Both the position numbers and the translations under genes were made by a program. From Okamejei kenojei (lineage: Eukaryota), in contig CM069147.1 in the NCBI GenBank assembly GCA_035221665.1, positions 20,336,001 through 20,400,000 on the forward strand: 64,000 bases of DNA, given 5' to 3'. Numbering within the stretch: the first letter of the stretch is position 1; every line of letters starts with the position of its first letter. Below, in pieces: positions 3,792-62,007 of the stretch. The notes under the pieces were generated by a model. That model was given only the letters and a program-made list of their open reading frames with translations. It searched no databases and was not told the DNA's origin.

Positions 3792-3884
3792 CATGTAACA
3801 GAAGAAAAAAAAAAGTTATGTTGTATGTCTTCTTTTCCATGTCAATGAATTACTTTGTCGTACAGCTTGTGAAGACATCGCAGT

Positions 3885-7303: not shown

Positions 7304-7548
7304 CTCCCAAAAATCAAAGAGAAAATTCTAAAACAGTTTTTTTCACAAAACTGGAACAAGGAAAAAAAAATTAATTCAAGAGTATTGAAAATTTACAAAA
7401 GTAATAAAAAAATTAGCCGTACCAAGCGAGCCTGGAGAAGCACCCTGTAACTAATTCGCAAAGTGTTAATTTTTTAAATGGAAATTATTTCTAAAACAGA
7501 AATGTAAAATATTATTGGTCCCGGGCACATAAATCCTAAAAAAGGTAC

Positions 7549-7619
7549 CTTGCCAAACTGTTCCACCAAAGGGTCCATGTAACCGAAAATGATGCCTTTT
7601 TTCACCTGTCCCCCCCCAT
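7549..7619 (-). CDS. Gene A leader exon (garbled)
   Basis: Copy of 31132-31186 (gtaccttgccaaactg...gatgc...ttcac); boundaries approximate. Confidence 0.55.
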
Positions 7620-15975: not shown

Positions 15976-16241
15976 CTGACTCTTGATTCTGTCAAAAAAT
16001 ATTATTATCTTGTCGTATCTAGGGGAAGATGTAGATTTGGCTTTTTTTTTCCATTTTCGTTTCATTATCCCATCTGGAAGCGAAGCTTTGTAAACTTGTT
16101 TAATTCAACCCTCTACTGTTTACAGTAATGGCAACATGTTTGATGACAATAAAGCGCTCTGGGACCAAAAGCAGTTTTAAAACACGTGTTTCCCTGTGTT
16201 TCTCTAGTTGTTTTTTTTTGTTAAGCAGCTGATCTCTTCTT

Positions 16242-17751
16242 TTTTTTTTTAAATTTAAAAATATAGATTTTGTTTAATTGGAAACAATGTACAGTAGTAT
16301 AAACCGTGGGTAACATAATACATTTCTTGTAATACTTCTTGTTTTAAACATAATACTAGAAAAGTAACAGAAGTAAGAAAAAGAGGAAAAGGAGAAAGTT
16401 AAGTAAAGTGGTGATATTAATAGTTCGTGAGAGAATAGAGAAAAATAACCCAAAAATATGTGAAGAGAGAGAGAAAAAAAAAGAGAGAAAAAAACCCAAA
16501 AAATATAAATAAAAAATAAGAAAACAAAGCAGAAAAAAAATAAAAAGAAAGAAATGGTCTCCAAATCTGAGGAAGGACATTATTGCCATAGAGGGAGTGC
16601 AGAGAAGGTTCACCAGACTGATTCCTGGGATGTCAGGACTGTCTTATGAAGAAAGACTGGATAGACTCAGTTTATACTCTCTAGAATTTAGGAGATTGAG
16701 AGGGGATCTTATAGAAACTTACAAAATTCTTAAGGGGTTGGACAGGCTAGATGCAGGAAGATTGTTCCCGATGTTGGGGAAGTCCAGGACAAGGGGTCAC
16801 AGCTTAGGGATAAGGGGGAAATCCTTTAAGACCGAGATGAGAAAGACTTTTTTCACACAGAGAGTGGTGAGTCTCTGGAACTCTCTGCCACAGAGGGTAG
16901 TTGAGGCCAGTTCATTGGCTATATTTAAGAGGGAGTTAGATGTGGCCCTTGTGGCTAAGGGGATCAGAGGGTATGGAGAGAAGGCAGGTACGGGATACTG
17001 AGTTGGATGATCAGCCATGATCATATTGAATGGCGGTGCAGGCTCGAAGGGCCGAATGGCCTACTCCTGCACCTAATTTCTATGTCTATGTTTCTATGAA
17101 AGAGGGATATACCTACTTCATAACTTTCCACACCCCTCACCCGGTTGTGAAACAGTTAATTTCCGGGGTTATGTTGCACCATATACTTGTAAGAAGTCGA
17201 TAAAGGGAGACCAAATCTTTAAGAATTGGTCTGGTTTACCTGCTAGGACGAATCTCATATCGTCAAGATGTAACAGTTCAGACAAGCTTGAAATCCACAT
17301 TTTAAGCGTTGGGGTGGGTGGCTTTTTCCAGAATTTGAGTATACGTTTTTTTGCCGTTATCAAACCATAATTATGGAGACAATTTTGGAACGAAGTCAGC
17401 TCAGAGCCGGCTTCTATTACAAAAAATAATCAGTTCTGTATTGGGGACCAATTTTATTTTAAATAATTTTGTGAAATTTTCAAAAATGTCTTTCCAAAAT
17501 GTATGGAGTTTTATGCAGGAGACAAAGGAGTGTGCTACAGTTGCATCATGAGATAAACACTTATCACAGATGTGAGAAACTTTTGGAAACAATTTATTCA
17601 ATTTAGTTTTCGAGTATTATAGTCTATTTTGAATTGAATTAAGGTATGTCTTACGTATTAATCGAACATTTGTGTACATATAGCAAGTATTTATCCCATC
17701 TGTCTTTCGAAATTTTTACAGATAGTTCTTGTTCCCACTCTCTTTTGATTG
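16242..17751 (-). mobile_element. 5'-truncated L1-type LINE with poly(A) end, long flanking duplication and a nested CR1
   Basis: ORF2 C-terminal Cys-rich motif ICDKC..ATVAHSFVSC..LHTFW and AKKRILKFWK..F.KIWSPF; T-run at 16240; flanking direct repeat CTAGTTGTTTTCTTTGTTAAGCAGCTnATCTCTTCTT. Confidence 0.75.
16554..17098 (+). mobile_element. Young CR1 3' fragment nested in the L1 3' UTR
   Basis: Intact 134-aa ORF2 C-terminus (QRRFTRLIPGM...RTRGHS...WNSLP); tail ttctatgtctatgtttctatg. Confidence 0.9.
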
Positions 17752-18729
17752 CACGTTCCCTCGTGTTTATCTAGTTGTTTTCTTTGTTAAGCAGCTCATC
17801 TCTTCTTGCAAGCATATTAACCGACAGATTATTTCTGATTTTTTTCAGCTGGAATTACTTTAGTGTTTCGAAATGCCCCTCTCTTGTAGTAACCGATAAC
17901 ACAGGGGAATGTCAGGATATTTATCCAATTATCAATTTTATAATGATTGCCAATGTAACAATAAGTGGTTAGTCCTTCTGCGTTGCAATAGAAAGATTGG
18001 CACATTTAAAACTTGTTTTGAATCGATATCAAGATAATTGTTTCGTAATTCTTTTTTTCCAGAATGTACACGGCGCGCAATTACCAAACATAAAATTCGC
18101 AGAGCAAATATTTAGGTATCAGAAACAGGGTCTCAAATAAATTACTTAAATTAGACTTCTTCCACTTCAGCGTCAAATTGGATGCCGCGAGCAGTTTGTA
18201 ACTTCAGATCATCGTACTCTTTGACCACAGCGAGTTTCCATGATGTCACCAGCAGATTCAAGGTACATTACTCTTATGGGTTACTTACTTTAACCTCGAG
18301 CTATGAATGTATTTATGGTGGTTCATTGGCTATATCATCTTTTTATAGAGAAGTTGCAAATGTGCGTACTCTGGCTACAGCGAATTACAGACAGAAGCTG
18401 AAGTTTGAAGAAAGGTCTCGACTGGAAACGGCACATACGCATCTGCGACGCTGTCTGATCCGCTGAGTTACTCCAGCACCATGTGTCTTTTTTAAATTTC
18501 CTTCCAGAGGACATACCCTTTCCAATCGCAATGGAACAAGAATCAAAAAAAGACACTTACAAAGGACCAGAATAAATTGAAAAGAAGGCTGACAAGCACG
18601 CACGCACAGATTTAGATAGAGACATGCACACATGTATTTAAACGCATACGTTTTACGGCAATGTTTTCTCAAAAATATACAAAACGCCAACTTTCATTGA
18701 CACACCTTTAAACCATTTAAAGAAAATAC

Positions 18730-20400
18730 GCAGAACGTGCTTTACGGGAAGATAAAGGTCTTGCAAAGTGCGTTTAGGGAGTTCCACAAATGTTTAAAAA
18801 AATGACTTAATGAGTCCTATCTCAGGATTCATGCGTGGGACCTGTATAGGAAACATTGATCGATCTGAACTGGAAGGGAACGAAGATCAGAGAAGAGAGG
18901 ATTACTCAAGCTACTTGGAAGTGTTTAAGCTAACTTGGGAAGGGAGAAGGTCGGTGGAAGCATAGAACCAGTGCAACAACTGGGGTGAAATTTGCGCAGG
19001 ACAAACCAAGCAAGCCCAACGGGCAGAGTAGAGGGTGGCAGGTTCGCAAGCCGAGGAGACTTAGCAGGCTCAACAGCATTTACTTTAATGCAAGGTGTCT
19101 CATTGGCAAGTCAGATGACATTAGAGCATGGGTCAGAACTTGGAATGATGACTTTATTGCAATCACATAACTGTAGGTGAGGGAAGAGGGAAGGACAAGA
19201 CTGGCAACTTAATGTTCCAAGTTATACAACTTTCAGGTGTGAGAGAGGGTACTGAAGAAGAACAGGGGGGTACGTTTGCATTGCATGTTAGGCAGAAAAT
19301 AACTAGCCCGTTGGGAGGATATCCTGGAGGGTTCACCCAATGAGGCCATATGGATAGAATTTGGGAATAAGGGAGGAGCGATCACTTTGCCAGAGTTATG
19401 TGATAGGCTTCCCAGTAGTCAGGAAAAATGAGTGGACCAGCAAGCTGCCAAAGTTTGTTATAGTGGTCATTTTCATAGGCTCAATCTTAACTGGAATGTC
19501 CTGATTGTCAAGGGTTTAGATGGGTAGAAATTTGTTCAGTGTGTAATCTACATTTTGTGAGCCAATATATTATTGGGCCTGTCAGAGATGAGTCAGTACA
19601 ATGCTCGACATTATCTCAGGAAAGCAAACTGGGTAGGTGGCGGAAATGTTGGTGGATTGAGACTTTTTGAACAGTGAAAATTCAGAAATGTTCAAGTTAT
19701 TTATGCAAAGGGATCAGGTTGTTCCTTAAATTCGAGCAAGGCTTGTTTCAATCGCATAACTAGAACTTGACGAATGTAGACTGCGCACAGATGTGTGAGG
19801 TAAAACAACAACTGACAAGTGGAAGTCTTTTAAGGGACAATTAACCAGACTTCAGCTTCAGCAAGTTCTAATTAGCGTGAAAGCAAAGATGGCAAGGCAG
19901 GAGATACCTGTGGCCCAGGCAGAGGTGTCAGTACCTTCATTCTTCATTGGTGACTGTCCAAAAGATGGAAGGATAACTACTACTCTTTCACTTAGGAAGA
20001 GCACCAAAGATAAGCCGGCAATTACAACTGTTGTGCTTTACTTCATTAATGAGGGACATTAATGAGGAAGGTCTTAAGAGATATGATTTATGTACATTTG
20101 ATAATTCAGGTATTTATTAGGGATAGTCGGTAGAGCTTTGTGCGGGGGTAAATCCTGCCTCACTAATTTGATTGATTAGAATTTTATGAGGTGAGAACTA
20201 AACAGTTCATCAAGGCGGGATTGTAGGCATTTTTTTGATGTGAACTTCACTAAAGCATTTGACATGGTTTCACATTGTAGGCTGGTTCAGGAAATTAAGA
20301 CACATTGGACCCAATGTAAGCTGGCTAACAGCATCTGAAATTGGCATGGTGAAAGTAGACAGTTTGTAGTGGCGGAAAGCTACATTTCTGACTGCCTTGG
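18730..20400 (+). mobile_element. Old CR1 LINE remnant (endonuclease to RT)
   Basis: SIYFNARCLIGKSDDIRAWVRTWNDDFIAIT resembles the CR1 APE endonuclease N-terminus; copy at ~41400-43100. Confidence 0.7.
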
Positions 20401-23400
20401 CAATTAATTCCACACAACCATGGCCTTCTGTATGGAAATAAAACTTTCCCTCACTTCTCCTTTAAATTTAACTGGTGTCAACTTAAACAATGCTATTTAA
20501 TTCCAGACTCTCCTGGTGAAGGAAATGACTACCTATTGTCCTATCTATGCTTCTGATAAATATATAAATCTTAATGTGTTCACGCTCAATATCATAAACT
20601 TCAGTGAGAATAATCCAAGTCAACACAATTTCTTCTTCTATCTACTGCTTACCGTTCTCGACATGATCCTTGTGAAACTATTCTGCAAACTCTCTATGGC
20701 TACTATATTTTCCTGTGGTGTGGTGATCAGAACTGTATGTAGTACGCCAAAGGTGATCATAAACAGCACATGCTTACTAACATGTTTCAGTGCTTTATGC
20801 TCCCACTGCCTTCCAGGCAAAACCTATCTGTATTTTATGTTTTTCCTTCCATGTTCTTGTTCATGACATATTACTTACATGGATACATTTAGCTCTAAAA
20901 AATACTCAAGAAACACAACATTATTCAGGATAAAGAAACACTTCTCATTGATACCCATTCACCAACATAAAATGAATAGTCTCCATTACTGTTGCATCAT
21001 AGCTGCAGTGGACCACGTTGATGGAAATATATTGCAATTCCTTCAGCTATTTCCTATCGAGGAGTATTGTCAGGAGATCTTTCACTTGAAGGGGCAATCA
21101 TGGAAGGTGACCTACCAATTTTACACGGTATTTAAAGAATTCCTCAGTTACAGGTGCTTAGTTATGTTGCAGTTGCTCAAGACATTAGTGAGGCCACGTT
21201 TGGAGTATTGTCTTCAGTTTTCATCACCCTATTGTAGGGAATGTTATTGGTGCAGACATGTTTTACGAGGATGTTGTCAGGAGTAGACGGGGGAGGTTGA
21301 GCAGGCTAGGACTTTATTCCTTGGAGTGCAGGAGAATGAGGAGTGATCTTCTACAGATATATGATCATGAGGGGAATAGATAGGGTAAACGTCTACTTTG
21401 TCAAACCTTAAAAATTCCATTAGGCCACCCAATTACATTGGTTATTCATGCAGACAAGCCCAAATCAATGTTTTATTTCTGGATAAGTATTGCCTCATTT
21501 TGTACACTGTACTCCAGTTCAATCCACTTACCTTATTCTTTTCAGCTTTTCAATTCTGTCCGAGTAAAAATGAACGGTGCCATGTTCATGGCCCCGTTAA
21601 TATCTATTCGTAGATTGGTGTATTAATGCTCGCAATAACTAGGCATTATTTGGTATTTATCTTTCCAGGAATGTTGGCATCATCAACGAATCCAGCATTT
21701 ATTGTCCGTTCCCAGTTGCCCTGAGAAGATGGACATTATCCACAGGCTTGAATAACTGCATTTCTTCATGTGAATGAACTGGGAAGGAAGCAATTGGGAA
21801 GGAATGCAATTGGGAAGGAAGCACTCAGATTTATAAGTAAATCTGATGATGAAAAAAACAGCATTTTTTAAAGTTAGGATGGTTGCCAGATCCTGATGCC
21901 ATGCTGCAGTTTAGGTTGGTAGATGGGAAGGTGATCAAGGCTGGTGTTGAACTTCTTCAATGTTTTTGGAGTTGGATTTATCCAGGCAAGTAGGTTAAGC
22001 TTCGGCATGCTCTTAGATTATGAATGGGCTGTCAGGAGGAGAGTCATTTCAAATCACCTGAGCAATTTAAGCATTCTTTAAAGAATACTGCTTCATACCT
22101 ATCTAAATCAAAAACTAATTAGCTATTAAATGGCCATTCTTGTACGTGTATTTAGTTCCTGGATTTTACTTCATTTTACCATTAGATTTAAACAAATCTG
22201 ACATTGCGAACTACAAACAATTTGTTGCATTTGATTATGGCTCATTTATACTTTCAATATCCATCCAATTTCATGTAATTAGCAGTTGAAAACGTCCACA
22301 TCAAGGGATACTATTACAAAAGTGATGTCAATGCATAAAATGGTTAAGTTACAACTTATCTGTTACAAGTCATTAAGTCGTAAATTCAGACAAACTGATA
22401 GAGCATATTTAATAAGGACTCAATATCTATAAAATTGATTCATTGCTCAAAATATATATTCTAAGAATTAATTTCTTACCGATATCATTTTGTGGAAGAA
22501 ATTAAAAATTTAGAATGAGTTAAATTTAGAATGAGTTTGGCATAAAATTAGATCTAATAAACACCAGTGAATAATAGTTTTTACAACCTTTGAACTTTTA
22601 AAATTTTCAAGGCATAACTCTTTCCTGTCAAGATCACAGTTTATTTTTCTAATCTCGTAGTTTATTTCATGCCACATTTGAAGTTTATGTCAGTTTTGCA
22701 TTTATATATCTTTCTGGAAGAAAGGGACTGAAAAAATATACAAATTCAAATGGATGCAAACTAATAGTTACCAGTATCTTTATATCAGATCTAATTTCGC
22801 ATATTCATTATAATTTAATTGAAAACGATTTGACAGGAAATAACTTGCCCAATATATGTTTTGAGCAGTGGATTAAGTTTATAACCTTTGCCTCCTTTGT
22901 GAAATATTCTGCGCTAATTAATTTGGATTCAACATTTGTGGTATCATTTGAATCAGGCAGGCGGGTTGCAGACATCGGAGTCATGGTGACTTAAGTCTTT
23001 AATCACCAGCCTCAGGCATGCTGAGGTGGTGGAATGATGGGAGAGCGCAACATCCAAGTGCTGGAGGCACCGCCCAAATGGAAAAGGTTCACGATGCTAA
23101 ATTGCAGAAAATGGATTTGACAAAGTCTGTAGTACTTCGCTGAAGCCACAAGGTGGAGCCCGCCTCTCATGCAGCGAAAAGAGCCTCTCTATGGCAGATA
23201 GAAGCGATTTTTTTTCTGATGAAGGATGCAGAAGAGCTAGACATCAGTTTGGAATTGGGATCTTGCCTTTCAACAACAACATCGGGAAGCATATTTTTAT
23301 TTAGGTATTTGTAAAACCTGGACTCGTCTCCCTGAACAAAGCTAGAATTACTCGGCCAATTGCAGCTTTTAAGACTGAGACGGTGGTCTGGTTTTGAGTA

Positions 23401-23440
23401 AACAGTGCAATTTTTCAGTATAATACGTTTAGGTTCAGTC

Positions 23441-23585
23441 AGGGGTAGGAGATTGCAACCTTCACGTGGTCCGCCCCGTTTCGACGAATGCAATCAACCT
23501 GGCGTGCACATTCAAATAAGATCACATAGAACAAGTTGTCCTACAACTTTAGGCTGTGCACGCCACACGCCAGAAGAAGAAGAAT
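23441..23585 (+). mobile_element. Short interspersed repeat with (GAA)n tail in the 3' UTR of gene B (copy 46127-46270)
   Basis: Ends in agaagaagaagaa; TTCAGTCAG occurs on both sides (possible TSD). Confidence 0.45.
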
Positions 23586-23607
23586 AAGCAGATTCAGTCA
23601 GTTGTTT

Positions 23608-23617
23608 CTAGCATGAT
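23608..23617 (-). CDS. Gene B terminal coding exon (RSC*)
   Basis: Acceptor gttttgtttctttgacAG; phase 2; TAG at 23608-23610. Confidence 0.65.
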
Positions 23618-26600
23618 CTGTCAAAGAAACAAAACATTTAAAGTTTATATCAACTGAATTATGTGATAAGTTTCTCGACCCCTTACGGTCTTACCTGTTT
23701 CCCATCACATGCTTGGAGGTCTTTCCATGTTCCTCTCTGCTCATTGTTTGCTCTGATGTCTCGACCAATCGGTCAACCTTTACCACGGAGCCTAGACGGG
23801 GAGATCAATTAATTGGGTACTATAGTGCAGATTTGGCGATCGTGAGTTATTTTGAATGTTAACATATTTTCTTACACCACTCATGTTATTATGTGCCGAC
23901 AAGATATCCAACGGGCGCCGATTCCCTATTGCCCATTTTGTGCTCCAGACTAAAATCGATTTGTAGCCTTTGTCTCCAGATGGGTTCAAAGTCAAGGTGA
24001 GTGAATCATTACTAAATTATACTCTGAATAATACCCTGGACGTCAGTTTTGAAGACATTCCCAACGCTTCATCGGACAGGGATCAGCCTCGGCTGGGCTC
24101 CACCCTTCAGAAGTAAAAACAATGGGATGGGGACCAATTCGGGCAGATGCAGGAATTATAACATTCAGCGGAGTCCCGACTGACCACAAACATGAAAGAA
24201 GGAACGGCAATAGTGCCGACAACTTTTACATCAAACGATTGGGAAATAACCAATTTATCCAATATGCATTGGCCCAAGATAAGCAGTTGCACAGAGCTGT
24301 AACTTGAGGAAGGAAACCGCTGCAAGTGGCGACATTTATTTTCCCATTAATATAATCGTTTTATAACAGTTCGATTAGAAGACGGTATTGTTATCCTTGA
24401 TATTAACGATGATGAACAATTTATTTTTCTAAGCTCTTTCAATGCCCTCTTTTGATTTGGGATTTTTACAAGTGAATTTGGAACACTGATGATAGCGGAG
24501 ACTTGACGGAATTGTTCTCCTCTGAGTCTGGGGATGGAGAACTGATATATTTCTGTACCATTTGGGGATCACGATCTTGTTATTAACTGTGTAAATTGTG
24601 GCCAAATAGCATCAATTCACGTAGCGCCATTTGATTCTCCGCAGCGCCATTTTACAGGAAAGTTGAAATTGAACTCTAGAATGAAGCTTGATTCACCTTT
24701 GGCAGAGCTTGATCCAAAAACAATTCGCAAGGTAGCCAACGCCAGTAAAATGATCAATGTACCTCCTACATTGCGAAGGACATGGACAACGCGAGCCGAA
24801 CCTGCAGACGTAAAAAATAATTGAGCGATAAGACAATTATCTCAAGTGAATGAACAAACTATAGAATTTTATTTGTGTAAAGAGCTTTATCAAGTGTCAC
24901 TATATTACAAAAATATCCAAATAAAATAGCAATATTAGGCAAATGGCCACTGTACAAAATAAACGCGAGATCTTGCTTCCAATATGAACAATATTGTTAT
25001 TGCATTAAATGTCAACGAGTGGTACATTTCCAAGTCAAGCTAGTGTGCGATTTGGAAGGCAGCCTGCAGGCCGTGGTGTTCACATGCACCTGCTGCCCGT
25101 GTCCTTGTTTGTGATCCAACCAATCCAGAAATCTATCAATGTCAATCCTCCCTTTTCAAACATCCTCAATGCTTCGAGGTAGTGAATTACGAAGATTCAC
25201 ACATCTGAGTAGAGTCATAGAGTCACAGAATATTACAGTGTGGAAACAGGCCCTTTGGCCCAACTCGCCTACACCGGCCAACAGTTGGCCAGCTACCCTA
25301 GTCCCACTTACCTGTGCTTGGTTCATAACCCTCCAAACCTTTCCTATCCATGTACCTGTCCAACTGTTTCTTAAACGATGGGATAGTCCCAGCCTCAACT
25401 ACCTTCTCTGGCAGCTTGTTCCATACACCCTCCACCCTCTGCGTGAAAATGTTACCCCTCGGATTCTTATTAAATATTTTCACCTTCACCTTGAATTAAT
25501 GTCCTCTGGTCCTCGATTCCCCTACTCTGGGTAGAATCTGTGCATCTAGCCGATCTATTCCACTCATAATTTTGTATACTTCCATAAGATCTCCTCTCAT
25601 CCTCCTACGCTCTATGGAATAGAGACCCAGCCTACTTAATGTCTCCCTATAGTTCACACCCTCTAGTCATGGCAACATCCTCATAAATCTGTTTAAGAAG
25701 GAACTGCAGATGCTGGAAAATCAGAGGTAGACAAATATGCTGGAGAAACTCAGTGGGTGAGGCAGCATCTATGGAGCGAAGGAAATAGGCAACATTTCAG
25801 GCCAAAACCCTTCCTCCTCGTAAATCTTTTCGGAAACCCTTTCAAGATTGACAATATATTTCCTATAACATGGTGCCCAGAACTGAACACAATATTCTAA
25901 ATGTGGTCTCACCAACGTCTTATACAACTGCAACATGACTTCCCAACTTCTATACTCAATACTCTGATGAAGGCCAATGTGGCAAAAGCCTTCTTGACCA
26001 CCTTATCTACCTGCGATTCGACCTTCAAGGAACCATGCACTTGTACTCCTAGATATCTTTGCTTTACAACACTACCCAGAGGCCTACCATTTACTGTTTA
26101 GGTCCTGCCCTTGTTCAACTTCCCAAAATGTAACACCTCACAATTTAATACAAATTCCATCAACCATTCCTCTGCCCACCTGGCCAAGCGATCCAGATCC
26201 TGCTGCAATCGTTTTCAACCTTCTTCACTCTCTGCAAAACCACTAACTTTTGTACCATCAGCAAACTTGCTAATCTTGCCCTGTATGTTCTCATCCAAAT
26301 CATTGATGTAGATAACAAACAGTAACGGGCCCAGCACCGAACCCTATGGCATACCACCAGTCACAGGCCTCCATTCTGAGAAGCAACCTTCCACTATCAA
26401 CCTCTGTTTCCTGCCATGGAGCTAATTTGCTATCCATTCAGCTATCTCTGCTTGGATCCTATGAGATCTAACCTTCCAAAACAGCCAACCATGCGGCACC
26501 TTGTCGAATGCCTTATTAAAACATCTACAGCTCTGCCCTCATCAACCTTTTTGCTCACGGCTTAAAAAAAAAATCAATCAGATTTGTGAGACACGATGTC

Positions 26601-29600
26601 CCATGTACAAAACCATGCTGACTGTCCTTAATCAGCCCATGCCCATCCAAATGCCTGTATATCCTATCCCTCAGAATACTTTCCAGTAACTTACCAACTA
26701 CAGATATTAAGCTCACCAGCCTATAGTTCCCAGCATTTTCCCTGCAGTCCTCTTGAAAAGAGGCACAACATTGTGCATACCTTTTGATTTTAAAGCAAAA
26801 CTGATCTGGGTAAAACTGACAAGGCCAGCACATCCAGTATTCCCAATTCATGCTTGTCCTTCACAATGTGGCAGTGAGCAGCCTTTGTGAATCACTGCAG
26901 TCCTCTCAGTGAAGATAATTCCACAGTGTTATTGAGTAATGAGTTCCAGGATCAAATCCAAGCGACGATACGGACGATTTATTTACAAGTCATTACGGTG
27001 TGTGACTCGGAAGGGAATCTGCAGGAGATGGCGCGTTCCTATGCACCTGTTGCCCTTGATCATCATTTTCAAAAACTCTATTGATCTCAGCTCTGAAATA
27101 CAAGATTATGGATCTGCGATGTTCCGAGGTACGGAATTACAAAGATTCGCGCATCTCTGGGAAGTGAAATTTCGCCTTAATATAAACGTTAAAAGCCGAC
27201 TTCCTGTCTTAAAGAAAATATGTCTTGTTCGGAGCATTCTCCTTCCCCATTCGTCATATTATGTCCCTTTGTAGTCGAGAGTTGAATGTTTACTTGCAAC
27301 ACCACTGTCAAGTGCCTGAAAGTTTGCTGTTTCACACGCACGATATATATTAAACGTATAAAATAATCTCACGCAGTTCTAATTGAGAAAGTATAGCGCT
27401 AAATTATGCATTAGGCTGCTTGCACATCGATATTCTCTCGTTTCCCTGATCGCTGACCAGTCTGAAGAAGGGTGTCGACCCGAAACGTCGCCTATCTCCT
27501 TCGCTCCTTCGATGCTGCTGCACCCGCTGAGTTTTCTCCAGCTTTTTGTGTAACCCTCGATTCTCCAGCATCTGCAGTTTCTTCGTTAACACTTTGTCTA
27601 TTCTACTGTGAATATATAGGTTAACGTTTACTACTCCACGTACAGTATTCGGCCTGATGTCATTTCTAAATCGGATCGGAGGTCTCCCTCTGTTCCCAGC
27701 TCTGTTTGCCTGTCTTACCTGGCTTGACGGTGTAGTCGACTCTGGCCGCGACCGTAAGGGAGACATGTGACACTAGGCAGGTGTAAATATCAACGCGCCA
27801 GGTAGGCTTCGTTACTTCGAGAAAACTGGAAGCCACATACAACCCCTCCACGCTACTGGTGTTCACAGGTTCTTCCCCGGTGAAAATTGTTACACCATTT
27901 CTTTGCCAGGATATTTTCACTTCTTTCGGAAAAAAGGCAGCCGTTTGACACACAAGTTTTGGCGGCGAACTGCCATTAACTTGGCTAATGCTCAATGGAG
28001 TTGGCGGAGCTGTAACAGAAGAAACAAAAAGTTATGTTGTATGTCTTCTTTCCATGTCAATGAATACTTTGTCGTACCGCTTGTGAAGACATCGCAGTAT
28101 CAGACTGGATAGGCTCGGCTTGTACTCGCTAGAATTTAGAAGATTGAGGGGGGATCTTATAGAAACTTACAAAATTCTTAAGGGGCTGGACAGGCTAGAT
28201 GCAGGAAGATTGTTCCCGATGTTGGGGAGGTCCAGAACAAGGGGTCACAGTTTAAGGATAAGGGGGAAGTCTTTTAGGACGGAGATGAGAAAACCATTTT
28301 TCACACATGGTGAATCTGTGGAATTATCTGCCACAGAAGGTAGTTGAGGCCAGTTCATTTGCTATATCTAAGAGGGAGTTAGATGTGGCCCTTGTGGCTA
28401 AAGGGATCTAGGGGTACGGAGAGAAGGCAGGTACAGGATACTGAGTTGGATGATCAGCCATGATCATATTGAATGGTGGTGCAGGCTCGAAGGGCCGAAT
28501 GGCCTACTCCTGCACCTATTTTCTATGTTTCTAAGTCCACATGGGTTATCGGTACGTTCACTTTTAAACTAATGGAGTTTATAGTTCGTCTTACCATGGA
28601 CAGTAAAATACATTCAAGGAATACATAGGAATGTGATGTTCGATATAAGTAATATGCGGATAATGTCCCATTGTTCTGAATGGAAGAGCCAGATTTAGCG
28701 CGCCGTAGAAGCTAGCAGCAATGTTTAGTAATTACATCAGCAATGACTGTGTTTAACATACTTGTTTCAAAGAATGATACAGGCCCGGTGTCGCCTTCAC
28801 GCTGACTATTAAACTCCTATTAATTAATCCAATTTTCCCGTCGCACCCATATCAACTGTCCTCATTCTTCACCGCCACAATCAATTATCAAGGGATAATT
28901 TACAGCTGGTTACCCTACCAACCAGCGAAAAGTTGGCAATGGATACGTTAGCGTAGCAACGGGGAAAAAAACAGGAATTTGCGAGATTATTAAACTGCAC
29001 ACAGACTAACGAATCCAGCCCTGTATATATTCACATCTCGCCAATGCATATGGTCTAGGGGCAGGGTTTGGCTTCATCTATCGATCTGAGGTTTGTCCCC
29101 ATAATAGTTCAGAGACTGGGATTGAGAGTTTAGATGAAGTAACTTTCACAAGGAAAACCTTTTTCCAGGCCGCGATATACGGTATGATTGTATATGGTAT
29201 GATTGAGTTATACTGACAATTGGTTGATAATAACAAATAAAGGTGATAGAACGTGCAAGCGACTTCCAATGTCACAACACATTTCATCTATATCTACTGC
29301 CTTTTCTAAATTTGCTCGATATATTGAACACATTCCATCTAAGTAAGATTCTATTGAACCGAACTCCATGTTTGTCATTTACGAGCACTGATATTTCTCA
29401 GTTAAATCTACAGTCAGTGTTTAGCTGGAAGGACAGCCTCTTGCTAAGGTGTATTGGGAGTTTAGTACAAACAATCTGTTGAACATCTAACTTTTAAATC
29501 TTCTTACATTCCGTTTTTGTACTAACAAGTTATTGAATACGGATCATTATTGTCTTCGGAAGAGAGTTTTGTGTTTATTCTCAACCTCAGCGAGTGCACT

Positions 29601-31186
29601 ACCAGCTAAAACTCAGAGTTTCTCCATGGCACAAAAACAGATTATTTTATGTGGAATAAATATTTGTTGCGAAGTTCAGTGACAGCGTCGTTTTACTCGC
29701 AAGCATTTCAATCGAGGGTCGTGTAAATGGAAACCACGAGTTGCAAGGACAGGAGCACGGGTGGTTCCTCAAAAGACCACATTCTGTTCGTGCTTTACAG
29801 ATATTTGGCGGTGAAATAAAAATGGTCGAATACACACAAATACACAATGAAGAATTGGGTGACGTTTAGGGTCGAGACACTTCTTCAGTCTGAATCGTCA
29901 CTCTTTCCTACTCTCCAGAGATGCTGCCTGTCCCGCCGAATAACTCCAGCATTTTTTGTCTATCCAAATCATGAGAGCTCCCTTTATTCACCTGTTTCCT
30001 GACTTTAAGGATAAAACTAATAGATTTCGGAAAATTCGTTATAACAAATACTGGGTAGACAATTTGTAGCGGTTGCGTCAAAAATGATAAGAGTGTGTGT
30101 GGACTGTGGGTGGACACTCTTGTGTTGAGGTTGTCGTCACGGTTGGCCTGGAATGGTGACTTTTCATTATACTTAAAAGAGCCGACCCAGACTCAATGTG
30201 TTAAAATTACTCCCGTGAGGAAAAAGCCGCCATACTTCCCACAGTCCAGATTAAATATCCAAGTTGCTTGAACATCTTCCCTGAAAAACAATGCAGTCAC
30301 TGAACACCATGGGAATGACGAAGAGTGAATCTGAATCGTGGGCGATCGCAGCGCGACTCCACAGAAGGACAAAGGAAAAGGCCCTCTGGGAGCACGAAAC
30401 GAGAACAACCCTCCCTCGCCACACACATGCTGCCCGATCAGCTAATTATTTCCAGACATTTCAATTTTCAAGTCGGCGGAGTGGTTTGATTTCATAACAA
30501 AAAATCCATTATTAGTAATCATCCAGTTTTAACCCAGTGATAAAATGTAATGTTATTCACATTAGAGAGCTTAATTTATACTACAGAGAGCTTAAGTTCT
30601 CTCCGTCATGGGATACTTACCAATTACAGTGAGCCTGGAGCCAGGTCCATCTCCGATAGATTGCTGCTGATGTTTCACTTTACAATAATAAACCCCGGTG
30701 TCCGCTACATTTGCATTCAGGAGAACAAAATCTGCACTGCCCTTTTTGGTATAAATTATTTTTCTGCTGTCTGGTTCTATAAATGTCTTCTCTCCCCATC
30801 TCCACCAGTAAACATCAGGAGTAACTTGTTGTATTGAGAACGTGCAGAACATGGATGCATTGCCTCCTCTGTGGACGGTCAGGTCTTTCGGGAATTGGTC
30901 CACTTTGGTCGAAGTCACTTCGTTGGCTGCCAGAAATCAAGGAAAAATACTGAAAACAGTTTCACAAACTGGACAAGGAAAATTAATCAAGAGTTGAAAA
31001 TTACAAAAGTAAATTAGAATTAGCGACAAGCGAGCTGGAGAAGCACTGTAACTAAATTCGCAGTGGGTAATTAATGGAGTATTCTAAAACAGAATTAAAT
31101 ATGATGGTCGGGCACATATATCTAAAAGTACCTTGCCAAACTGTCACCAGAAGGGTCATGTACCGAAATGATGCTTTCACTGTCAT
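23608..31186 (-). CDS. Gene B: VJ-C1-TM Ig-superfamily receptor, activating type, 287 aa (chimeric). Exons 31132-31186, 30621-30926, 27719-28009, 24697-24801, 23695-23791, 23608-23617
   Basis: All introns GT-AG; phases 1,1,1,1,2; 864 nt in frame from MTVKASFRYMTLLVTVWQA to ...KHVMGNRSC*. Confidence 0.85.
23695..23791 (-). CDS. Gene B cytoplasmic exon (GSVVKVDRLVETSEQTMSREEHGKTSKHVMGN)
   Basis: Acceptor tctccccgtctAG and donor GTaag; 97 nt, phase 1 to 2; open frame with no Tyr. Confidence 0.75.
24697..24801 (-). CDS. Gene B TM exon with Arg (GSARVVHVLRNVGGTLIILLALATLRIVFGSSSAK)
   Basis: Acceptor tttttacgtctgcAG and donor GTgaat; 105 nt, phase 1-1. Confidence 0.85.
25210..26772 (-). mobile_element. 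CR1 LINE truncated by the duplication junction, with a nested Penelope-type short repeat (~25690-25815)
   Basis: GNYRLVSLISVVGKLLESILRDRIY...SQHGFVHG; the longer copy at 47912-49736 continues past the breakpoint. Confidence 0.85.
27437..27598 (+). mobile_element. Penelope pLTR-type short insertion, specific to copy 2
   Basis: TSD TATTCT (27431-27436 and 27599-27604); empty site cgatattctactgtg at 3361; hammerhead core 27462-27489. Confidence 0.8.
27719..28009 (-). CDS. Gene B C1-set Ig domain exon
   Basis: LVCQTAAFFPKEVKISW...GLYVASSFLEV...YTCLVSHVSL, containing the Ig/MHC C1 signature YxCxVxH; 291 nt, phase 1-1. Confidence 0.93.
28100..28532 (+). mobile_element. CR1 LINE 3' fragment
   Basis: ORF 28120-28347 YSLEFRRLRGDLIETYKILKGLDR. 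Confidence 0.88.
30621..30926 (-). CDS. Gene B V-set exon with germline-joined J-like G strand
   Basis: KVDQFP...SMFC...VYWWR...DTGVYYC...GDGPGSRLTV; 306 nt, phase 1-1, AG/GT intact. Confidence 0.95.
31132..31186 (-). CDS. Gene B leader exon (MTVKASFRYMTLLVTVWQ)
   Basis: ATG plus 55 nt, phase 1, donor GTactt; homologous exon in gene C. Confidence 0.8.
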
Positions 31187-31212
31187 ATTTCAAGAAAGTT
31201 GTTGGCCGCTTG

Positions 31213-31311
31213 TTGCAAATGAGGGAAGTTTTCTAAAAGATTCTTGCAAGAAAGAGTTGCTGGTGAATACATATTTTCCGCTTGTGACCATGACATAGGA
31301 TGTCACATGAC
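31213..31311 (-). promoter_or_regulatory. Putative proximal promoter: ETS (ACTTCC), octamer-like ATTTGCA and E-box GTCATGTGAC
   Basis: Motifs retained in order in the diverged gene C upstream region (53501-53541). Confidence 0.45.
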
Positions 31312-31599
31312 GGTGAAGTGGGTGTCAAATTTGGTGCAATGTTGGTGGAGTGCTAGTATGAGCGAGGGTCCGCCCCCACTGCCAAGTGAACAGTTTCCAT
31401 CGGGGTACAATTCTCTCTCAGACTTCCCTGGGTCCATGTTGAAATAATTTACTGACCATTCAGAAGAGAATCGCAGATCTTCCTCCATCCTCCATCCAGA
31501 GGAAGGGAGGAAGGGGGGAGGGGGGAGGGGGAGGGGGGAGGGGGGAGGGGGGAGGGGGGGGGGCTCACTCAATATAAAAGAGCAAATTTGTGCTTGGAG

Positions 31600-33360
31600 T
31601 CGGGTTGAAGCAAGGTACTAAACGAGTACATTGCATCTGTATTGACCGAGGAGAAGAGCACGGAAGACGGTGAGTTCAGTGTTGAGAATATTAATATCCA
31701 ATTACACATTTTGGATTAAGGTACTGGGGGTTTTAAAAAAACATTAATTTGGATAAACCCACAGGGCCTAATGCGATAAATTCCAAGTGATTGAGAGAGG
31801 CAAGAGCGGAAATTGAAAGAGCCTTGACAAAGATTTTTGCATTTTATCTAGCTACATACAATGTTCTGGAGGACTGCAGAGTAGCTAATGTTGTTCCACG
31901 GTTTAAAAAGTGAAGTAGAGGGAATCTGACTAATACAGGCCTGTTGCACCTCACGTCCATAGTAAGGGGGGGGGGGGGGGGGGGGGGGGGGCTATTGGAT
32001 AGGATTCATTTGGATAGGATTTACTCCCATTTGGAAGAGAATATCAAGGGGTTTCATTTAGACCAGTCAGCATGGCTTTATACGTGACAGGTCATTTTTT
32101 ACTAACAATCCAGATTTTTTGAAGAGGGAGCAATGGTGATCCATGAAAGCAGGATAGTGGATGGCATCTATGTATATTTTAGGGATGCATTTGATGAAGG
32201 CTGATCCAAAAGATCAGAATCTTGTGTATTAACAGAGGATTAACAACGATTTGATTGTATGGATTCATAAATGGCTTACTAATAGAAGGTAGTGGTGGAA
32301 GAACGATATTCAGCCTGGAGGTCTGGATGATCTATTCTACATTTTTGTTGTAGTCCGTCCCCTTTGATATCTTGTTTTCACACCTTACCCTTACATATCT
32401 TTGTGTCTCCCTCTCCACTGACTCTCAGTCTGAAGAAGGGTCTCAACCTGAAATGTCACCCATTCCTTCCATCTAGAGTTGCTGCCTGTCCTGCTGGACT
32501 GAGCCTCACATCAGTGATACAACAGCTATTGGAGTGGATTATTCGGGAGAGGCTTTATTTGTATTTGGAAGAAAATGGGCTAATTAAAGACAGTCAGCGT
32601 GGCTTTGTACTTGGAAGGACATGTATTATGACCCTGATTGGTGTTTTTGAGCAGGAGATGAAGGTGATTGATCTGGGTGGGGCAGTGGATGCTGTCTACA
32701 TTTATTTTTAGCAAGACATTTGAAAAAATCCCTCATGGTAGGTAATCCAGAAGATGAAAGTGCTTGGAATCCAAGGTGATGTGGTTGCTTGAATTCAGAA
32801 CTGACTTTCTCAGAGAAGACTGAGTGCTGTGATTGTAGTGAGTTATTTTGGCTGGATGTCTGTGACCAATAAAGTTTCTCAGGGATCTGCACTGGGATCT
32901 CTGTCATCTGCAATATATAAAAATGATTCGCAAATAAATGGGTTGGTTAGTAGTTTTCAAATAATACCAAAATTGGGAAACTTGTGGAAAAGAGGTTGGC
33001 AGTCAAATTATATAAGAGGGATTATAATCAGTTGCAGAAATGAACGGAGAAATGGCAGAATGAGTGTGCAAGTGTGGTGCACTTTGGGAGGTCAAATGTA
33101 AGGGGAAAGTATACACTCAATGGAAAGTGCCTCAGCAGCATCGATATACAGAGGGCTCTCGGGCTCCTAGTCCATAGCTCCCTGATAAAGGTAATACAAG
33201 TAGATAAAGTAATAAATAAAGCATCTGATATGATTGCTTGCATCAATCAGAGCATTGAATAGAAAAGTCAGGAAATCGCGTTTAATTCAACTTGGCATCA
33301 TGTTCGGCATGGCCATTATGGGATCAGGGCCTGTTCCTGTGCTGTACTTTTCTATGTTCT
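31600..33360 (+). mobile_element. Degenerate CR1 fragments with a nested Penelope pLTR piece (~32340-32495)
   Basis: LIKDSQRGFVLGRTC...AVDAVYI, VSQGSALG and VHFGRSN peptides; hammerhead-like core 32430-32457. Confidence 0.75.
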
Positions 33361-33664
33361 AATGTGTTGCTATTAATTTAAATGTATTTCGTTTGCAATA
33401 AATTTGCAAAATCAAGATTTGCCGAAAAGTCTTCTCTACCAGATTAGTTGACCCAAATTAGGAAGAAATAATCCTTCAATGATGCCACTCACACTGCCAC
33501 CCAACGTGGTCTGCTCAATGATTTGGTAACTGCAGGACAGGGATAAATTGTTAGTCACTTCTAGAATTCAGGTACCTCCGGTTGCTTTGCAAATCAAAAA
33601 ATATAACGAGCTGCCAAGGGAATTGGCAGAAATGGGTATCATTATGACATTTAAATACAACCCA

Positions 33665-34015
33665 GACAGGCTATAAGGTCATAAGTGATGGGAGTAGAAT
33701 TAGACCACTCAATCTTCGCTGATCTATCTCTCCCAACTAACCCCATTCTCCTGCGTTCTCCCCATAACTGTCACCTGTACGAATCAAAAATCTATCTATC
33801 ACTGCCTTAAAAATATCCACTGGCTTGGCCTCTACAACTTTTTGTGGCAAAGAAATCCACAGATTCACCAGCCTCTGACTTAAAAAAAAAAATCCTCATC
33901 TCCTTCCTAAACGAATGTCCTTTAATTCTGAGTCGGTGACCTCTAGTCCCAGACTCTCCCACTAGTGGAAATGTCCTCTCCACATCCACGCTATCCAAGA
34001 CTTTCACTGTTCTGT
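33665..34015 (-). mobile_element. CR1 3' fragment
   Basis: LDSVDVERTFPLVGESGTRGHRLRIKG. Confidence 0.8.
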
Positions 34016-34539
34016 ACATTCCATTAACTGTGGTCATCAATCTGCCATTCTTTGCAATAGTTTTTCCACTTACTTTGTGATTCTTAATATCATCAAAACC
34101 AGAATCAAATATTTGGTTGTATTTACTTAATAAGAGGAGATGGATAATGAAACATGGATGATTTGCCAGTCTCACTTGCCAGCACCTGTTTCATGTCCCA
34201 AAAAAATATTTCCTCTCACTGCACCTGCCTGTCCTTTAACTGTCTCAATTATTTCTGCCTCAGCAGCTTCCTCCCACATCTCTTACACGTATGCACCACA
34301 TTTTGTGTGGTCCTCAGGTTCCATTAAATCTTTTCCATCTCTATAATACTAAAACTCTTCCTATTGTTTGTGTTTGTGCTGGCGAGGTGCCCATGATGTT
34401 TCAATCTGCTTTTCCTATCTTCTTCCAAACGCTAGGCCACAGCCTTCCCATTTTCGCATATCCTACTCACATTTTTCCCGTCAAGGGGATAATCACCTTC
34501 CTGTCGCATTCCCGCCTATATTTCCAAAGTTATTCATCC

Positions 34540-35665
34540 TTTAAATTTTAAAAACAGCCCCAAAATCTCACCCATTTCAGAAAAAAGAACCCGAGTGACG
34601 TCACAATGCACTCGGAAGGCAGGGCGGGACACTCCAGGAGGGAAGGGCACTCCAGCGCTCGCGGTGAATGAGGAGTGGCAGTGGCTGCAGGCGCCCAATG
34701 TCCAAACCTGGTGGGGAGGGTGGTGCTGGGGCTGGAGTGAGAGCAAAGCCTGGGGCTTTGGATGGGGCCATGACAGGGTCCGAGAAAGAAGCTGCCGCTG
34801 GAACCAAGGACGAGCCTGGGTCCAGCATCAGGGACGAACCCAGAGATGAAGTCCGGGCCTGGACTGGAGCCCAGGCAGCGGCCGAGCTGACGGCTGGATT
34901 CTACAGCCAGGGCCGGGCCGAGTATGCGAACCAGGCCGGGTTCTAGGCCCTGGCGCCGCTCTACAACCTGGGTAGGTGCTGGGGCAGGGAATGGGAGTGA
35001 TGCGAGGAGGATGAGGGAAATGATGAGGAAGGAGATGTGGTGGGGAGTGCAGTGGTTGAGGGAGATGGAGTGGGGGTGTGTGCAGGAGGAAGATGGGGAA
35101 GGGTGGAGGAGAGAGATGCCCCCTCCCTATCTACCATCACTCCCACCCTCTCTACCCCCTCCCTCTCCCTCCTTCTCCCCCCTCTCCCTCTCTACCCCTC
35201 CCCCCTCCCTCTCTACCACCCCCCCCTCTCTACTCCATCCCTCTCCATCTCCCTCAACCATCCATTCCTTCCACTCTACCCCTCCCTCTACCCCTCCCTC
35301 TCTCTCTATCCCCCTCCCTCTCTGCCCCTCCTCTCTACCACCCTCCATCTCCCACTACCCTCCCTCTCTACTCCCCCTCCCATCCCCCTCTCTACCCCCT
35401 CCTTCTCCCTCTCTACCCCTCCCCCTCCCTCTCTACCACCCCTCCCTCTCTACCCCCCTTCCCTCTCTAGAGATTGAAGAGGGTGAAGAGGAGGAAGAGG
35501 GAGTGCTGGGGGATGAGGAGAAATGAGCCACACCTGCGCAGTTGGGGACTATGCGTGAGTGGTGCAATATTGCGTTGGGGGAACGGCTTGCGTTGGGGGA
35601 ACGGGTGAGTGGTGGAATCTTGCGTTGGGGGAGTAGACCCAATGGGTCTGCACTTGGTCTGGTCT
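34540..35665 (-). mobile_element. GC-rich non-autonomous repeat with C/T low-complexity core
   Basis: 5' end AGACCAAGTGCAGACCCATTGGGTCT (hairpin GACCC-ATT-GGGTC), shared with 60233. Confidence 0.55.
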
Positions 35666-36992
35666 TACATTAAAACTGTGCCCTCTAGTATTTCTGACTC
35701 CCCCGTCCTGATGAAAAGTTTGTGGCTGTTCACCTTATCTATGCTCGTTGTGATTTAATATATAGACCTCTAAATGGCCAGATAGGTCTCCAACGCTCGT
35801 GGGAAAATGATCAAGCCAATCCTCATTGCTCAAAGCCCCCAGATTCAATAAATACATTATAGCTCTAACTAACCCAATATTGAATCTTATAGAGAATTGC
35901 ATATTAATGAATTGTGCCAATTTAGAAAAGTAAAACCAGATTCATACATGTCATTGTTAAGGGGAAATCAGGCTGATTTCTCAAAACATAGCCCCACAAT
36001 GTCGCGGCCGTCATCATTAATGGCTGTGAATTAACCCTCTAATCTAATTTTGTCTAATCATCCACGTTTGTGCAGGTGACAACATTACAAACTAGAAGTC
36101 TTGGTTTCCCTGCAGAACGAATGACCAACAACAGCAATCCCAATTAAGTATATCCTTTACAAAAACAATCCCGTCCTGATGCAGAGTTTGAGGCAGAAAC
36201 GTCGACTATCTGTTTACACCCACAGAACCTGCTCGACCCGCTGAGCTCTCCAGCAGATATTTGCTTCAGATTTCAGCACCCTCGAACAAGTTCTTCCTGC
36301 CTCCTTCACCCATACGTGCTTCTTCTCCTCCCTCCCTTCCCAGTTAGCTTTTCTCTCTCAATCTCCAGCGGTTTTCTCAAGAAAAATGGGCGAGTGCCAA
36401 GAGACGCTTGTTGTCCCTATTCCTGCTATTGTCTCAATCACCAATGCAGATCAGCATCCGTATATAATGAACTATTTCCAACGTTGGGATCTCACTGCAT
36501 CAGCGAATATGCAGTTCTCAGGAAGATCTGTCAGCTATAGTGTTGAGCTTCACCCAAAAAAGTGCGATTAACCAAAAAAGTCAATCGGAAAGCCGAAAAT
36601 AAATAAAGAAAGGCAGCGCGGAGCAACCATTTCAATGCTTGCTCCGTACTTGAAAACACATACAAAAGCAGAGGATTTATTTCTGATTTCCGAACTAATG
36701 GCACTCCCATACGTAGGGATATGGAAGTTACGGAAGGGACCATAAAACCTTTGTTGAAGATGCGATCTTAACTGATGTCAACTGAACACTTCATCTGTCC
36801 ATTCATCTAAATCACAAATCACAGCGAAAAGGATTTCACCTTTCAATATGTTTCAAATGTTCTTTATTCCTATTTTCACCACTGAAACCTAACGACCTTA
36901 CTCTTGTTGAGAGACTCTGCAGTACACTCTTGCCAAGTGTTTTCTGGAAGTCGCAACAGCAAAATTCACTGAATCTCCAGAATTTTGAATTG

Positions 36993-38570
36993 TATAGTCA
37001 TAGAGTCATACAGTGTGGAAACAGGCCTTTCGGCCCAACCTGCCCACACCGACCAACATGTCCCAACCACACTTCTCCCACCTGTCTGCGCTTGACCCAT
37101 ATCTCTGCCCTATCCATGTACCTGTTTAAATGTTTCTTATTACCGACGTTGCGATCTCACTGCATCAACGAATATGCAGTACTCGGGAAGATCTGTCAGC
37201 TATTGGGATAGTACCCGCCTCAAATACTTCCTCCAGCAGCTCGTTCCATGTATGCACCCGCCTTTGTGTGAAAAGGTTACCCCTCGGGTTTCTATTAAAT
37301 CTTTCCCCCCTCACCTTAAACCTATGTCATTTGGTTCTTGATTCCCCTACTCTGGGTAACAGGCTCTGTTCGCCTATCCAATCTATTCCTCTCATGATTT
37401 TGTACAACTCTCATCCTATTGTGCAACAAGGAATAGAATCCAAGGCTGCTCAACCTCTCCCTATAGCTCTGGCACTCGTGTCCAGGCAACATCCTCGTAA
37501 ATCTTCTCTGCACCCTTTCCAGCTTGACAACATATTTCCTAAAACAGTGCCAAGAACTGAACACAATACTCTAAATACGGTCTTACCAATGTCTTATATC
37601 ACTGCAACATGACCTCACAACGTCTATACTCAATACTCTGTCTGATTAAGGCATATGTGCTAAAAAGCCTTTTTGATCCACTCTACCTACCTGTGGTGCC
37701 ACTTTCAAAGAACTATGTACCTGCACTCCTCAGAGCACCATCCTGCACTTATGTAGGTCTTGCCCATGTTAGTCTTGCTATAATGTACCACCCCGCATTT
37801 CTATTAAATTCCATCAACCATTCTTCAGCCCACTTGACTAACTGATCAAGATCCTGCTGTAGTTTTTTGATAACCATCTTCACTACCTATACAAATCCAT
37901 TTTGACTATTGCTAATCATCCCACGTCCATCTAGAGGAATTTCTATCCTATCCCTCAGAATAATCTCCAGCAATTTACCAACCACGGATGATAAGATCAT
38001 TGGCCTGTAGTTCCCAGCCTTTTCCCTGCCAGCCTTCTTGAATGAAGCACAACATTTGCCACCCTCCAGTCTTTGGACATCTCGCTTGTATTTAAAAATG
38101 ATGATTCGTAAATCTCTGCCAGGGTCCTGCAATTTCCTCTCTAGCTTCCTAGAGTCCTTGGATATATCTGTTCACGTCTGGGAAATTTGTCTACCTTCAT
38201 ACCCTTCATGATATCCAGCACCTCTTCGACCGTAATACTGACTGCTCTCAAGATACTTCCAGTGACTGTCCCAAGTTCCTCAGTTCTCCTGTCTTTCTCC
38301 ATGGCTAAAAAAAATAGGAGAAGTACTCATTGAGGACCTTGCCCATCTCACGTGGCTCTACCAGAGTTGACCCTTTGATTCCTTATGGATCCCTCACTCT
38401 CTGGTTACCCTTTTGTCCCTTGATGTACTTATAAAATCTATTGGGATTATCCTTAATGCTATCTGCCAGGGATATTTCCTGTCCCCTTTTTGCCCTTCTG
38501 ATTTCCTTTTTTAGCTTACTCCTTAGTCCCCGAAACACTTCCAGTGATAAACTTGATCCCGTCAAACCTG
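36993..38570 (-). mobile_element. Degenerate CR1 LINE
   Basis: ORF fragments 37322-37564, 37887-38132 and 38383-38565. Confidence 0.85.
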
Positions 38571-38829
38571 ACTCTTGATTCTGTCAAAAATATTATTATC
38601 TTGTCGTATCTAGGGGAAGATGTAGATTTGGCTTTTTTTTTCCATTTTGTTTCATTATCCCATCTGGAAGCGAAGCTTTGTAAACTTGTTAATTCAACCC
38701 TCTACTGTTTACAGTAATGGCAACATGTTTGATGACAATAAAGCGCTCTGGGACCTAAAGCAGTTTAAAAACACGTGTTTCCCTGTGTTTCTCTAGTTGT
38801 TTTCTTTGTTAAGCAGCTGATCTCTTCTT

Positions 38830-57708: not shown

Positions 57709-57722
57709 TCACAACGAAGCAA

Positions 57723-61885: not shown

Positions 61886-62007
61886 AGATAGGCGGCTATT
61901 ATCAATTTTCAAGCAGTAAATGACTTGAAAATAGAATGTATCCCGTCTCTGATCAATGAACAGAACTGATAAATTGCGGTACTTGGTAAAATATGTAACG
62001 TTCTTAC

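Follow-up and report, generated by a model that had tools for sequence, protein, structure and literature searches.

A probable young tandem duplication with a microhomology joint and an in-frame hybrid receptor gene in a V(J)-C1-TM cluster of the skate Okamejei kenojei

Introduction

Can the assembly of a receptor gene from the parts of two neighbors be read from the DNA in which it took place? The question is raised by a 64,000-nucleotide stretch of the skate Okamejei kenojei (assembly GCA_035221665.1, contig CM069147.1, positions 20,336,001 to 20,400,000 of the forward strand), hereafter called the window, whose own positions are used throughout. It holds a cluster of genes, all on the minus strand, that combine a V exon with a germline-joined J-like end, one C1-set exon and a transmembrane (TM) exon. 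An original prediction, made from the letters of the window alone, proposed that one of these genes, gene B, was made by a tandem duplication that fused the ectodomain of gene A to the activating-type TM and tail of gene C. Paired activating and inhibitory receptors present near-identical ectodomains either on an uncharged TM segment with a tail of the immunoreceptor tyrosine-based inhibitory motif (ITIM) type, or in a short-tailed form whose TM segment has a basic residue. They are encoded in clusters that turn over by duplication, as in SIRP alpha/beta, KIR, LILR, Siglec-5/14 and CEACAM1/3 and, among VJ-type families, hagfish APAR and teleost NITR. Here, we describe the joint, the hybrid gene and its parents, and weigh what may have produced them. 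We consider it probable that the locus carries a real and young tandem segmental duplication of ~22-24 kb, in a non-rearranging V(J)-C1-TM cluster of a cartilaginous fish, with a microhomology joint and an in-frame hybrid gene B that has an arginine in its TM segment.

The Tandem Duplication and Its Joint

Comparison of the window with itself by BLAST gives two colinear copies arranged head to tail (2666-26769 and 26770-49073) with a single novel junction between them:

2666..26769, unstranded: copy 1, with A-type ectodomain exons and the gene B TM exon (C-type), plus intergenic DNA
26770..26772, unstranded: duplication joint, ATT, a 3-bp microhomology common to both parents with 0 bases inserted
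26770..49073, unstranded: copy 2, with the gene B ectodomain exons and the gene C TM exon, plus intergenic DNA
25170..26772, minus strand: fragment of a high-copy long interspersed element (LINE, CR1-like) in the C1-TM intron of gene B, with a match to RVT_1, cut in its reverse transcriptase (RT) coding region by the joint

At the joint gene B reads GAGGCACAAC ATT GTGCATACC. Gene C has GAGGCACAAC ATT at 49061-49073 and continues with TGCCACC, and gene A has ATT GTTCATACC from 2666, just after unrelated sequence that ends in TTGCCT. ATT is thus the only sequence shared, as had been predicted, and this holds at all three sites, with nothing inserted. The last 930 bases on the left (25843-26772) correspond to 48140-49073 at 98.9% identity, and the first 528 bases on the right (26770-27297) to 2666-3194, also at 98.9%; both matches are far above chance level. 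Site reading and self-BLAST together therefore place the left arm in the LINE of the gene C C1-TM intron and the right arm in the gene A C1-TM intron, where the original prediction had put them. The parental sequences at the breakpoint are LINE RT sequence on one side and unique intron on the other, and extended homology is absent, so that the proposal of a non-homologous tandem duplication is borne out by the 3-bp microhomology and the colinear copies alike. Both breakpoints also lie, as claimed, in the equivalent phase-1 C1-TM intron of genes C and A, the phase being read from the splice sites. At the joint the distal sequence precedes the proximal one, an order that a deletion cannot produce and that requires a duplication.

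The LINE gives the joint its polarity. RVT_1 of Pfam matches an open reading frame that runs across the joint, and the k-mer depth over the element is 1e4-1e6 in short-read contigs. The RT frame (...EDWWVANVVPLF...) is uninterrupted through 49073 in gene C and cut at 26772 in gene B, and older copies of the LINE at 37890-38407 and in its duplicate at 15290-15808 are likewise continuous through the position equivalent to 49073. Gene C therefore has the ancestral contiguity, and the joint in gene B is derived.

The Hybrid Gene B

Gene B spans the joint on the minus strand. Four exons were identified:

31132..31186, minus strand: leader exon (approximate ends), MTVKASFRYMTLLVTVWQ, with a phase-1 GT donor next to it; homologues have leaders that can be aligned to it
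30621..30926, minus strand: V exon with the germline-joined J-like end IGDGPGSRLTV; open, AG/GT, phase 1 to 1
27719..28009, minus strand: C1-set exon; open, AG/GT, phase 1 to 1
24697..24801, minus strand: Arg-class TM exon (..VVHVLRNVGGTLIILLALATLRIVF..), with no difference from that of gene C

Each exon is open, every splice site has AG/GT, and every intron is in phase 1, including the one that splits the leader. The V exon matches the V-set family of Pfam (5e-9) and the C1 exon the C1-set family (1.8e-13). In protein comparisons, which were made exon by exon, the V exon is 61% identical to the horn-shark protein P0154. The TM exons of genes B and C differ at 0 of 105 bases and encode an arginine within the segment (..VLRNVGGTLIILLALATL..). 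Since both breakpoints fall in the equivalent phase-1 intron, gene B reads from an A-type leader, V(J) and C1 into a C-type TM segment, and the predicted in-frame structure is confirmed by the open exons, their splice sites and phase, and the TM identity.

Parentage of Gene B

Both parents of gene B have been retained, gene A with its TM exon at 1346-1444 and gene C with its ectodomain beyond 49073:

1346..1444, minus strand: gene A TM exon, uncharged Cys class, LALIIGCVVGGLAILVPIIILTV; phase 1 to 1; not homologous to the TM exons of genes B and C
3484..3790, minus strand: gene A C1 exon, its 3' half identical to gene B and its 5' half garbled by homopolymer insertions (assembly noise)
6886..7295, minus strand: gene A V exon, unreadable with ~25% inserted bases; B-type at 19/24 of the sites that distinguish B from C
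47388..47492, minus strand: gene C TM exon, Arg class, 0/105 differences from gene B
50086..50376, minus strand: gene C C1 exon, open
52715..53020, minus strand: gene C V(J) exon, open (approximate ends)
4000..13000, unstranded: stretch of raw long-read quality, with ~20% extra bases relative to copy 2 and mismatches of 1-4%

The V exons of genes B and C are separated by 24 sites, at which gene A sides with B at 19 and with C at 2. Together with the identity of the B and C TM exons, this makes gene B A-type from the leader to C1 and C-type from the TM segment onward. The TM exon of gene A has no DNA homology to those of genes B and C and resembles the TM segments of the ITIM-bearing homologues P0154 and P0167. 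The claim that gene B carries the ectodomain of gene A stands in so far as the substitutions are A-type; the ectodomain of gene A itself is unreadable in the assembly, and due to the noise at 4000-13000 the A-type identity of gene B is based on substitutions only.

The noise has a clear origin. Within copy 1, identity to copy 2 drops to 74-90% between approximately 4000 and 13000, where 92% of the 1476 extra bases repeat the neighboring base, as homopolymer extensions, and the fraction of bases equal to the previous one is 0.41-0.46 vs. 0.28 elsewhere. This is unpolished long-read error and not divergence, and the apparent frameshifts of gene A, in C1 as well as in V, are not biological. An old duplication with conversion at its ends, which the low interior identity might suggest, was rejected, since the difference consists of ~20% one-sided homopolymer insertions with only 1-4% substitutions. 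The integrity of gene A is consequently not readable from the window. The 9 kb of unpolished sequence mimic divergence and pseudogenisation and make gene calls, frameshifts and divergence estimates in this part unreliable. The stretch is the only one of its kind in the window and includes a run of 16 G inside the gene A V exon.

Between genes B and C the V exons differ at 5 of 99 amino acids (95% identical; pN 0.022, pS 0.17, pN/pS ~0.13), and the C1 exons have pN 0.064 and pS 0.17 (pN/pS ~0.37). The V exon, which is the ligand-binding one, is thus more conserved than C1 between the A/B-type and C-type lineages. Diversifying selection acting on paired receptors would give the reverse pattern. 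The V domains of genes A and C were already close before the duplication and under purifying selection.

Divergence between the Copies

In their clean parts the two copies differ by 0.84-1.2%, and two larger changes separate them:

27437..27599, unstranded: insertion resembling a short interspersed element (SINE) in the C1-TM intron of gene B, with an ATTCT target duplication; absent at the matching gene A site 3369

The SINE-like element is ~160 bp long, and copies of it with 95% identity lie at 57716-57841 and 40268-40362. Within the LINE, the gene B intron has 405 bp (25438-25842) that are missing at 48140 in the intron of gene C; this difference arose after the duplication, either as a deletion in C or as an insertion in B. 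The description of the event as recent is therefore relative: it agrees with copies only 0.8-1.2% apart, yet the insertion and the indel have accrued since. Two B-specific substitutions, 26753T and 26775G, lie at most 20 nt from the joint, where ~0.4 would be expected at 1% divergence; they could reflect breakpoint-associated mutagenesis, or chance.

Read Evidence for the Joint

Short-read data were consulted as Logan contigs of runs labeled organism A, namely X1 (sample S1) and X2 and X3 (both sample S2), and a contig was counted as bridging if it covered 31 letters on each side of the joint. Run X3 contains an 83-nt contig of depth 10.1 that matches 26743-26825 perfectly, including 26753T and 26775G, and all junction-spanning 31-mers are present in this run at a depth of ~10. 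The left end of the contig is the first 31-mer that holds a base diagnostic of the right-hand side; words further left are common to thousands of LINE copies, so that a de Bruijn contig must end there. The flanks have a depth of 14-18 in X3, and the resulting joint/flank ratio of 0.55-0.7 fits one joint against two copies of the flanks, with depth taken relative to the flanks and not to single-copy sequence. In X1 the right-hand contig starts at 26776, one base past a site that distinguishes A from B, as is expected for a branch that never closes. The SINE-empty form was seen in contigs of X2 and X3. The runs have letters that differ from the assembly at 24550 and 24640, where both copies in the window agree, and they differ among themselves at 26935, 26945, 26964, and 27037; they therefore come from individuals other than the one assembled. 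The X3 contig is strong, though not conclusive, support for the joint.

Further evidence weighs against a real duplication with an intact hybrid gene. The X3 contig has 27 letters on the LINE side (30 with ATT), under the 31-letter rule, and comes from one run and from contigs only. None of the runs shows the B-specific letters 26847T or 27995A, and the RNA-labeled run X21 covers repeats only and no unique parts, and is probably DNA. The 9 kb of unpolished sequence in copy 1 are a sign of assembler difficulty at this locus. A regular-expression search for the tail exon of genes B and C, modeled on the catshark and Heptranchias proteins, found nothing convincing after the TM exon, and a similar search for the ITIM exon of gene A in 1-1345 found none; the cytoplasmic exons of gene A lie outside the window. 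The proviso attached to the original prediction, that two haplotypes may have been set side by side as a false duplication with no independent read across the joint and half-normal depth over both copies, mostly fails, as the junction 31-mers occur in the independent run X3, with a bridge that stays below the 31-letter rule.

Alternative Explanations

If the assembler had set two haplotypes in tandem, or a long read that was chimeric or wrongly overlapped, the joint and gene B would be unreal. The raw-read quality of 9 kb in copy 1 and the B-specific letters missing from all runs agree with this, and a difference of ~1% with transposable-element indels between the copies is possible for divergent haplotypes of an immune locus. 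However, the sequence is clean on both sides of the joint with no N bases, and the X1 contig ends at an A/B-distinguishing base as a non-closing branch should. Above all, a haplotype mis-join cannot create junction reads, and the junction 31-mers are present at depth ~10 in X3, from an individual with single-nucleotide variants unlike the assembly; we thus regard an assembly artefact as very unlikely. Still less credible is an origin of gene B by non-allelic homologous recombination (NAHR, homologous unequal crossing-over) or by gene conversion between paralogous introns, as for FCGR2C and hybrid KIR genes. A repeat-rich array of tandem paralogues is the usual substrate of NAHR, but the homology at the breakpoint is limited to ATT, between LINE RT sequence and unique intron, and the introns of genes A and C have no alignable homology around the breakpoints, which leaves this route next to no probability.

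The most serious competitor accepts the duplication and takes gene B to be its neutral by-product and not a working receptor: gene B would be a copy-number variant that is polymorphic, or else a gene that is decaying or not expressed. Run X21 gave no RNA support for gene B, its tail exon or exons were not found, a SINE has landed in its C1-TM intron, and it may be redundant, since an Arg-TM receptor whose V domain is 95% identical is already provided by gene C. On the other hand, although the copies have diverged neutrally by ~1%, all four exons identified in gene B are open and have canonical splice sites, and the joint with the same two flanking variants is common to the assembly individual and sample S2. 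We rate the by-product reading as unlikely, albeit well ahead of the other two. The contrary and stronger claim, that gene B is expressed and works as an activating receptor, that it arose less than a few million years ago by non-homologous intronic exon shuffling, and that it serves as an exact-ectodomain partner for the inhibitory-type gene A, is put forward tentatively, as somewhat short of an even chance. The duplication that produced gene B may still be segregating as a copy-number variant.

A Possible Mechanism

Given a real duplication, the ancestral order on the plus strand was A-tail, A-ectodomain, spacer, C-tail, C-ectodomain. The segment from the C1-TM intron of gene A (2666) to the LINE in the C1-TM intron of gene C (49073) was copied head to tail and joined at ATT by a non-homologous, microhomology-mediated join, which gave gene B as an in-frame, exon-shuffled gene. 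Such a join may be made by end-joining or by replication template switching. The two B-specific substitutions at most 20 nt from the joint, which are common to sample S2, fit template switching and prove nothing.

We infer from the TM arginine and from homologues that gene B would be a second receptor of the activating type, which may couple through this arginine to an acidic adaptor (DAP12 or FcR-gamma, for example), and that its ectodomain would present the ligand-binding domain of gene A. Gene A would be the inhibitory partner, given that its uncharged Cys-type TM segment belongs to an ITIM-tailed class elsewhere. The original prediction saw in this a snapshot of how paired receptors arise. 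This stands in the sense that gene B shares the ectodomain of gene A on an Arg-TM segment, but the pairing predates the event: the V domains of A and C were already 95% identical (pS 0.17), so the duplication added a second Arg-TM partner and did not found the pairing. If gene B is functional, the locus would be a base-resolved case of the origin of pathogen-driven paired receptors in the oldest lineage of jawed vertebrates, in a family that resembles antigen receptors in its VJ-C1 structure.

The Receptor Family in Cartilaginous Fish

Relatives with a single C1 domain and 240-380 amino acids were found only in cartilaginous fish by an exhaustive HMMER and word-index search, in Heterodontus, Scyliorhinus, Heptranchias, Mustelus, Pristis, Mobula, Narcine, Hypanus, and Callorhinchus. 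The best V identity among them is 61%, in Heterodontus. Their automatic names conflict and include "SIRP-alpha-like," "NCR3LG1-like," "tapasin-related," "Ig lambda-like," and "TCR beta-like." Long forms (P0154, P0025) have a Cys-type TM segment and tails with LTYAAL and AVYAEV motifs of the ITIM type, while short forms (P0165, P0166, P0045) have an arginine early in the TM segment, in catshark and Heptranchias at a position similar to that in genes B and C. As both TM classes occur in the homologues of other species, the two classes are old and the family is paired-receptor-like.

Three relatives, P0163 (Heterodontus), P0165 (Scyliorhinus), and P0166 (Heptranchias), carry the C-terminal motif GK-RL-ISA..HN.. 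after C1 or after the Arg-TM segment. This motif may be a conserved terminal exon of secreted and Arg-TM isoforms; in genes B and C, the sequence downstream of the TM exon yielded no counterpart. A search of a protein atlas with single exons returned generic V-set neighbors only (PD-1, TIGIT, CTLA4), a search with P0154 among the annotated proteins of the window's own species gave no match, and no paper naming this V(J)-C1-TM family was found in the literature.

Among PDB entries the C1 exon is closest to shark UrIg2 (9dmx), with 1e-19 over three domains and a modest match per domain (~30 bits), followed by Ig mu and alpha. The genes of the cluster share with UrIg and UrIg2 a germline-joined VJ exon, a split leader, a C1-set domain next in order and an occurrence in cartilaginous fish (PMC12227049; PDB 9dmx). 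UrIg has three C domains and is secreted, and UrIg2 has 9-11 C domains (PMC12227049), whereas the genes described here have one C1 domain and two TM classes and form a multigene cluster. SIRP, for which some relatives are automatically named, does not appear in the 60 best PDB matches for the V or the C1 domain and has a V-C1-C1 structure, unlike the V(J) and single C1 exon before the TM segment here.

Comparison with Known Hybrid and Paired Receptors

The closest analogue of gene B is human FCGR2C, which lies at the joint of a tandem duplication of the FCGR2/3 module and is a hybrid of the FCGR2B ectodomain with the TM and tail exons of FCGR2A (PMC6563257). In both cases a multi-gene module was duplicated in tandem, with one chimeric gene at the joint as the mark of the event and both parents kept on the flanks, and in both the chimera has its ectodomain exons from the inhibitory-type parent and its TM/cytoplasmic exons from the activating-type one. 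The human hybrid is a product of NAHR between homologous genes, and its modules span ~80 kb with 94-95% identity (PMC6563257). In contrast, the skate joint is non-homologous, with 3 bp of microhomology between a LINE and unique intron, and the module is 22-24 kb long, ~99% identical and from another family in another lineage.

The cluster is also like other paired receptors in that genes A and B are ~1% apart where the sequence is clean, genes B and C share 95% of the amino acids of their V domains and the TM segment of A is unrelated to that of B and C; the signaling of the skate family is predicted from the TM arginine and from homologues. The principle of fusing an ectodomain to the TM segment of a neighbor is established in primates (FCGR2C, KIR), and duplication as a route to activating and inhibitory receptor pairs is already known from mammals. 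The skate case would bring cartilaginous fish, and a V(J)-C1-TM family that is poorly described, under the same principle, and it shows that parental homology is not needed for such a fusion. It also gives a nucleotide-resolved build of an activating-type receptor in which both parents, the joint and the later changes (SINE and indel) are still visible.

Other Features of the Window

A fourth gene of the cluster, gene D, reaches into the window at its right end:

61979..62098, minus strand: gene D TM exon, A class (..ILGCIVGGLLIVILIIFF..), its DNA 74.5% identical to the gene A TM exon

The ectodomain of gene D lies beyond the right end of the window, and a gap of N bases (61277-61638) lies just downstream of its TM exon; a regular-expression search for its ITIM exon gave nothing convincing. 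The spacer of each copy contains a GC-rich tract of low complexity (53-59% GC), at 34500-35550 and at 12000-12800, with long open reading frames rich in Pro, Ser, and Leu on both strands. These tracts are probably microsatellite or minisatellite sequence and not a gene.

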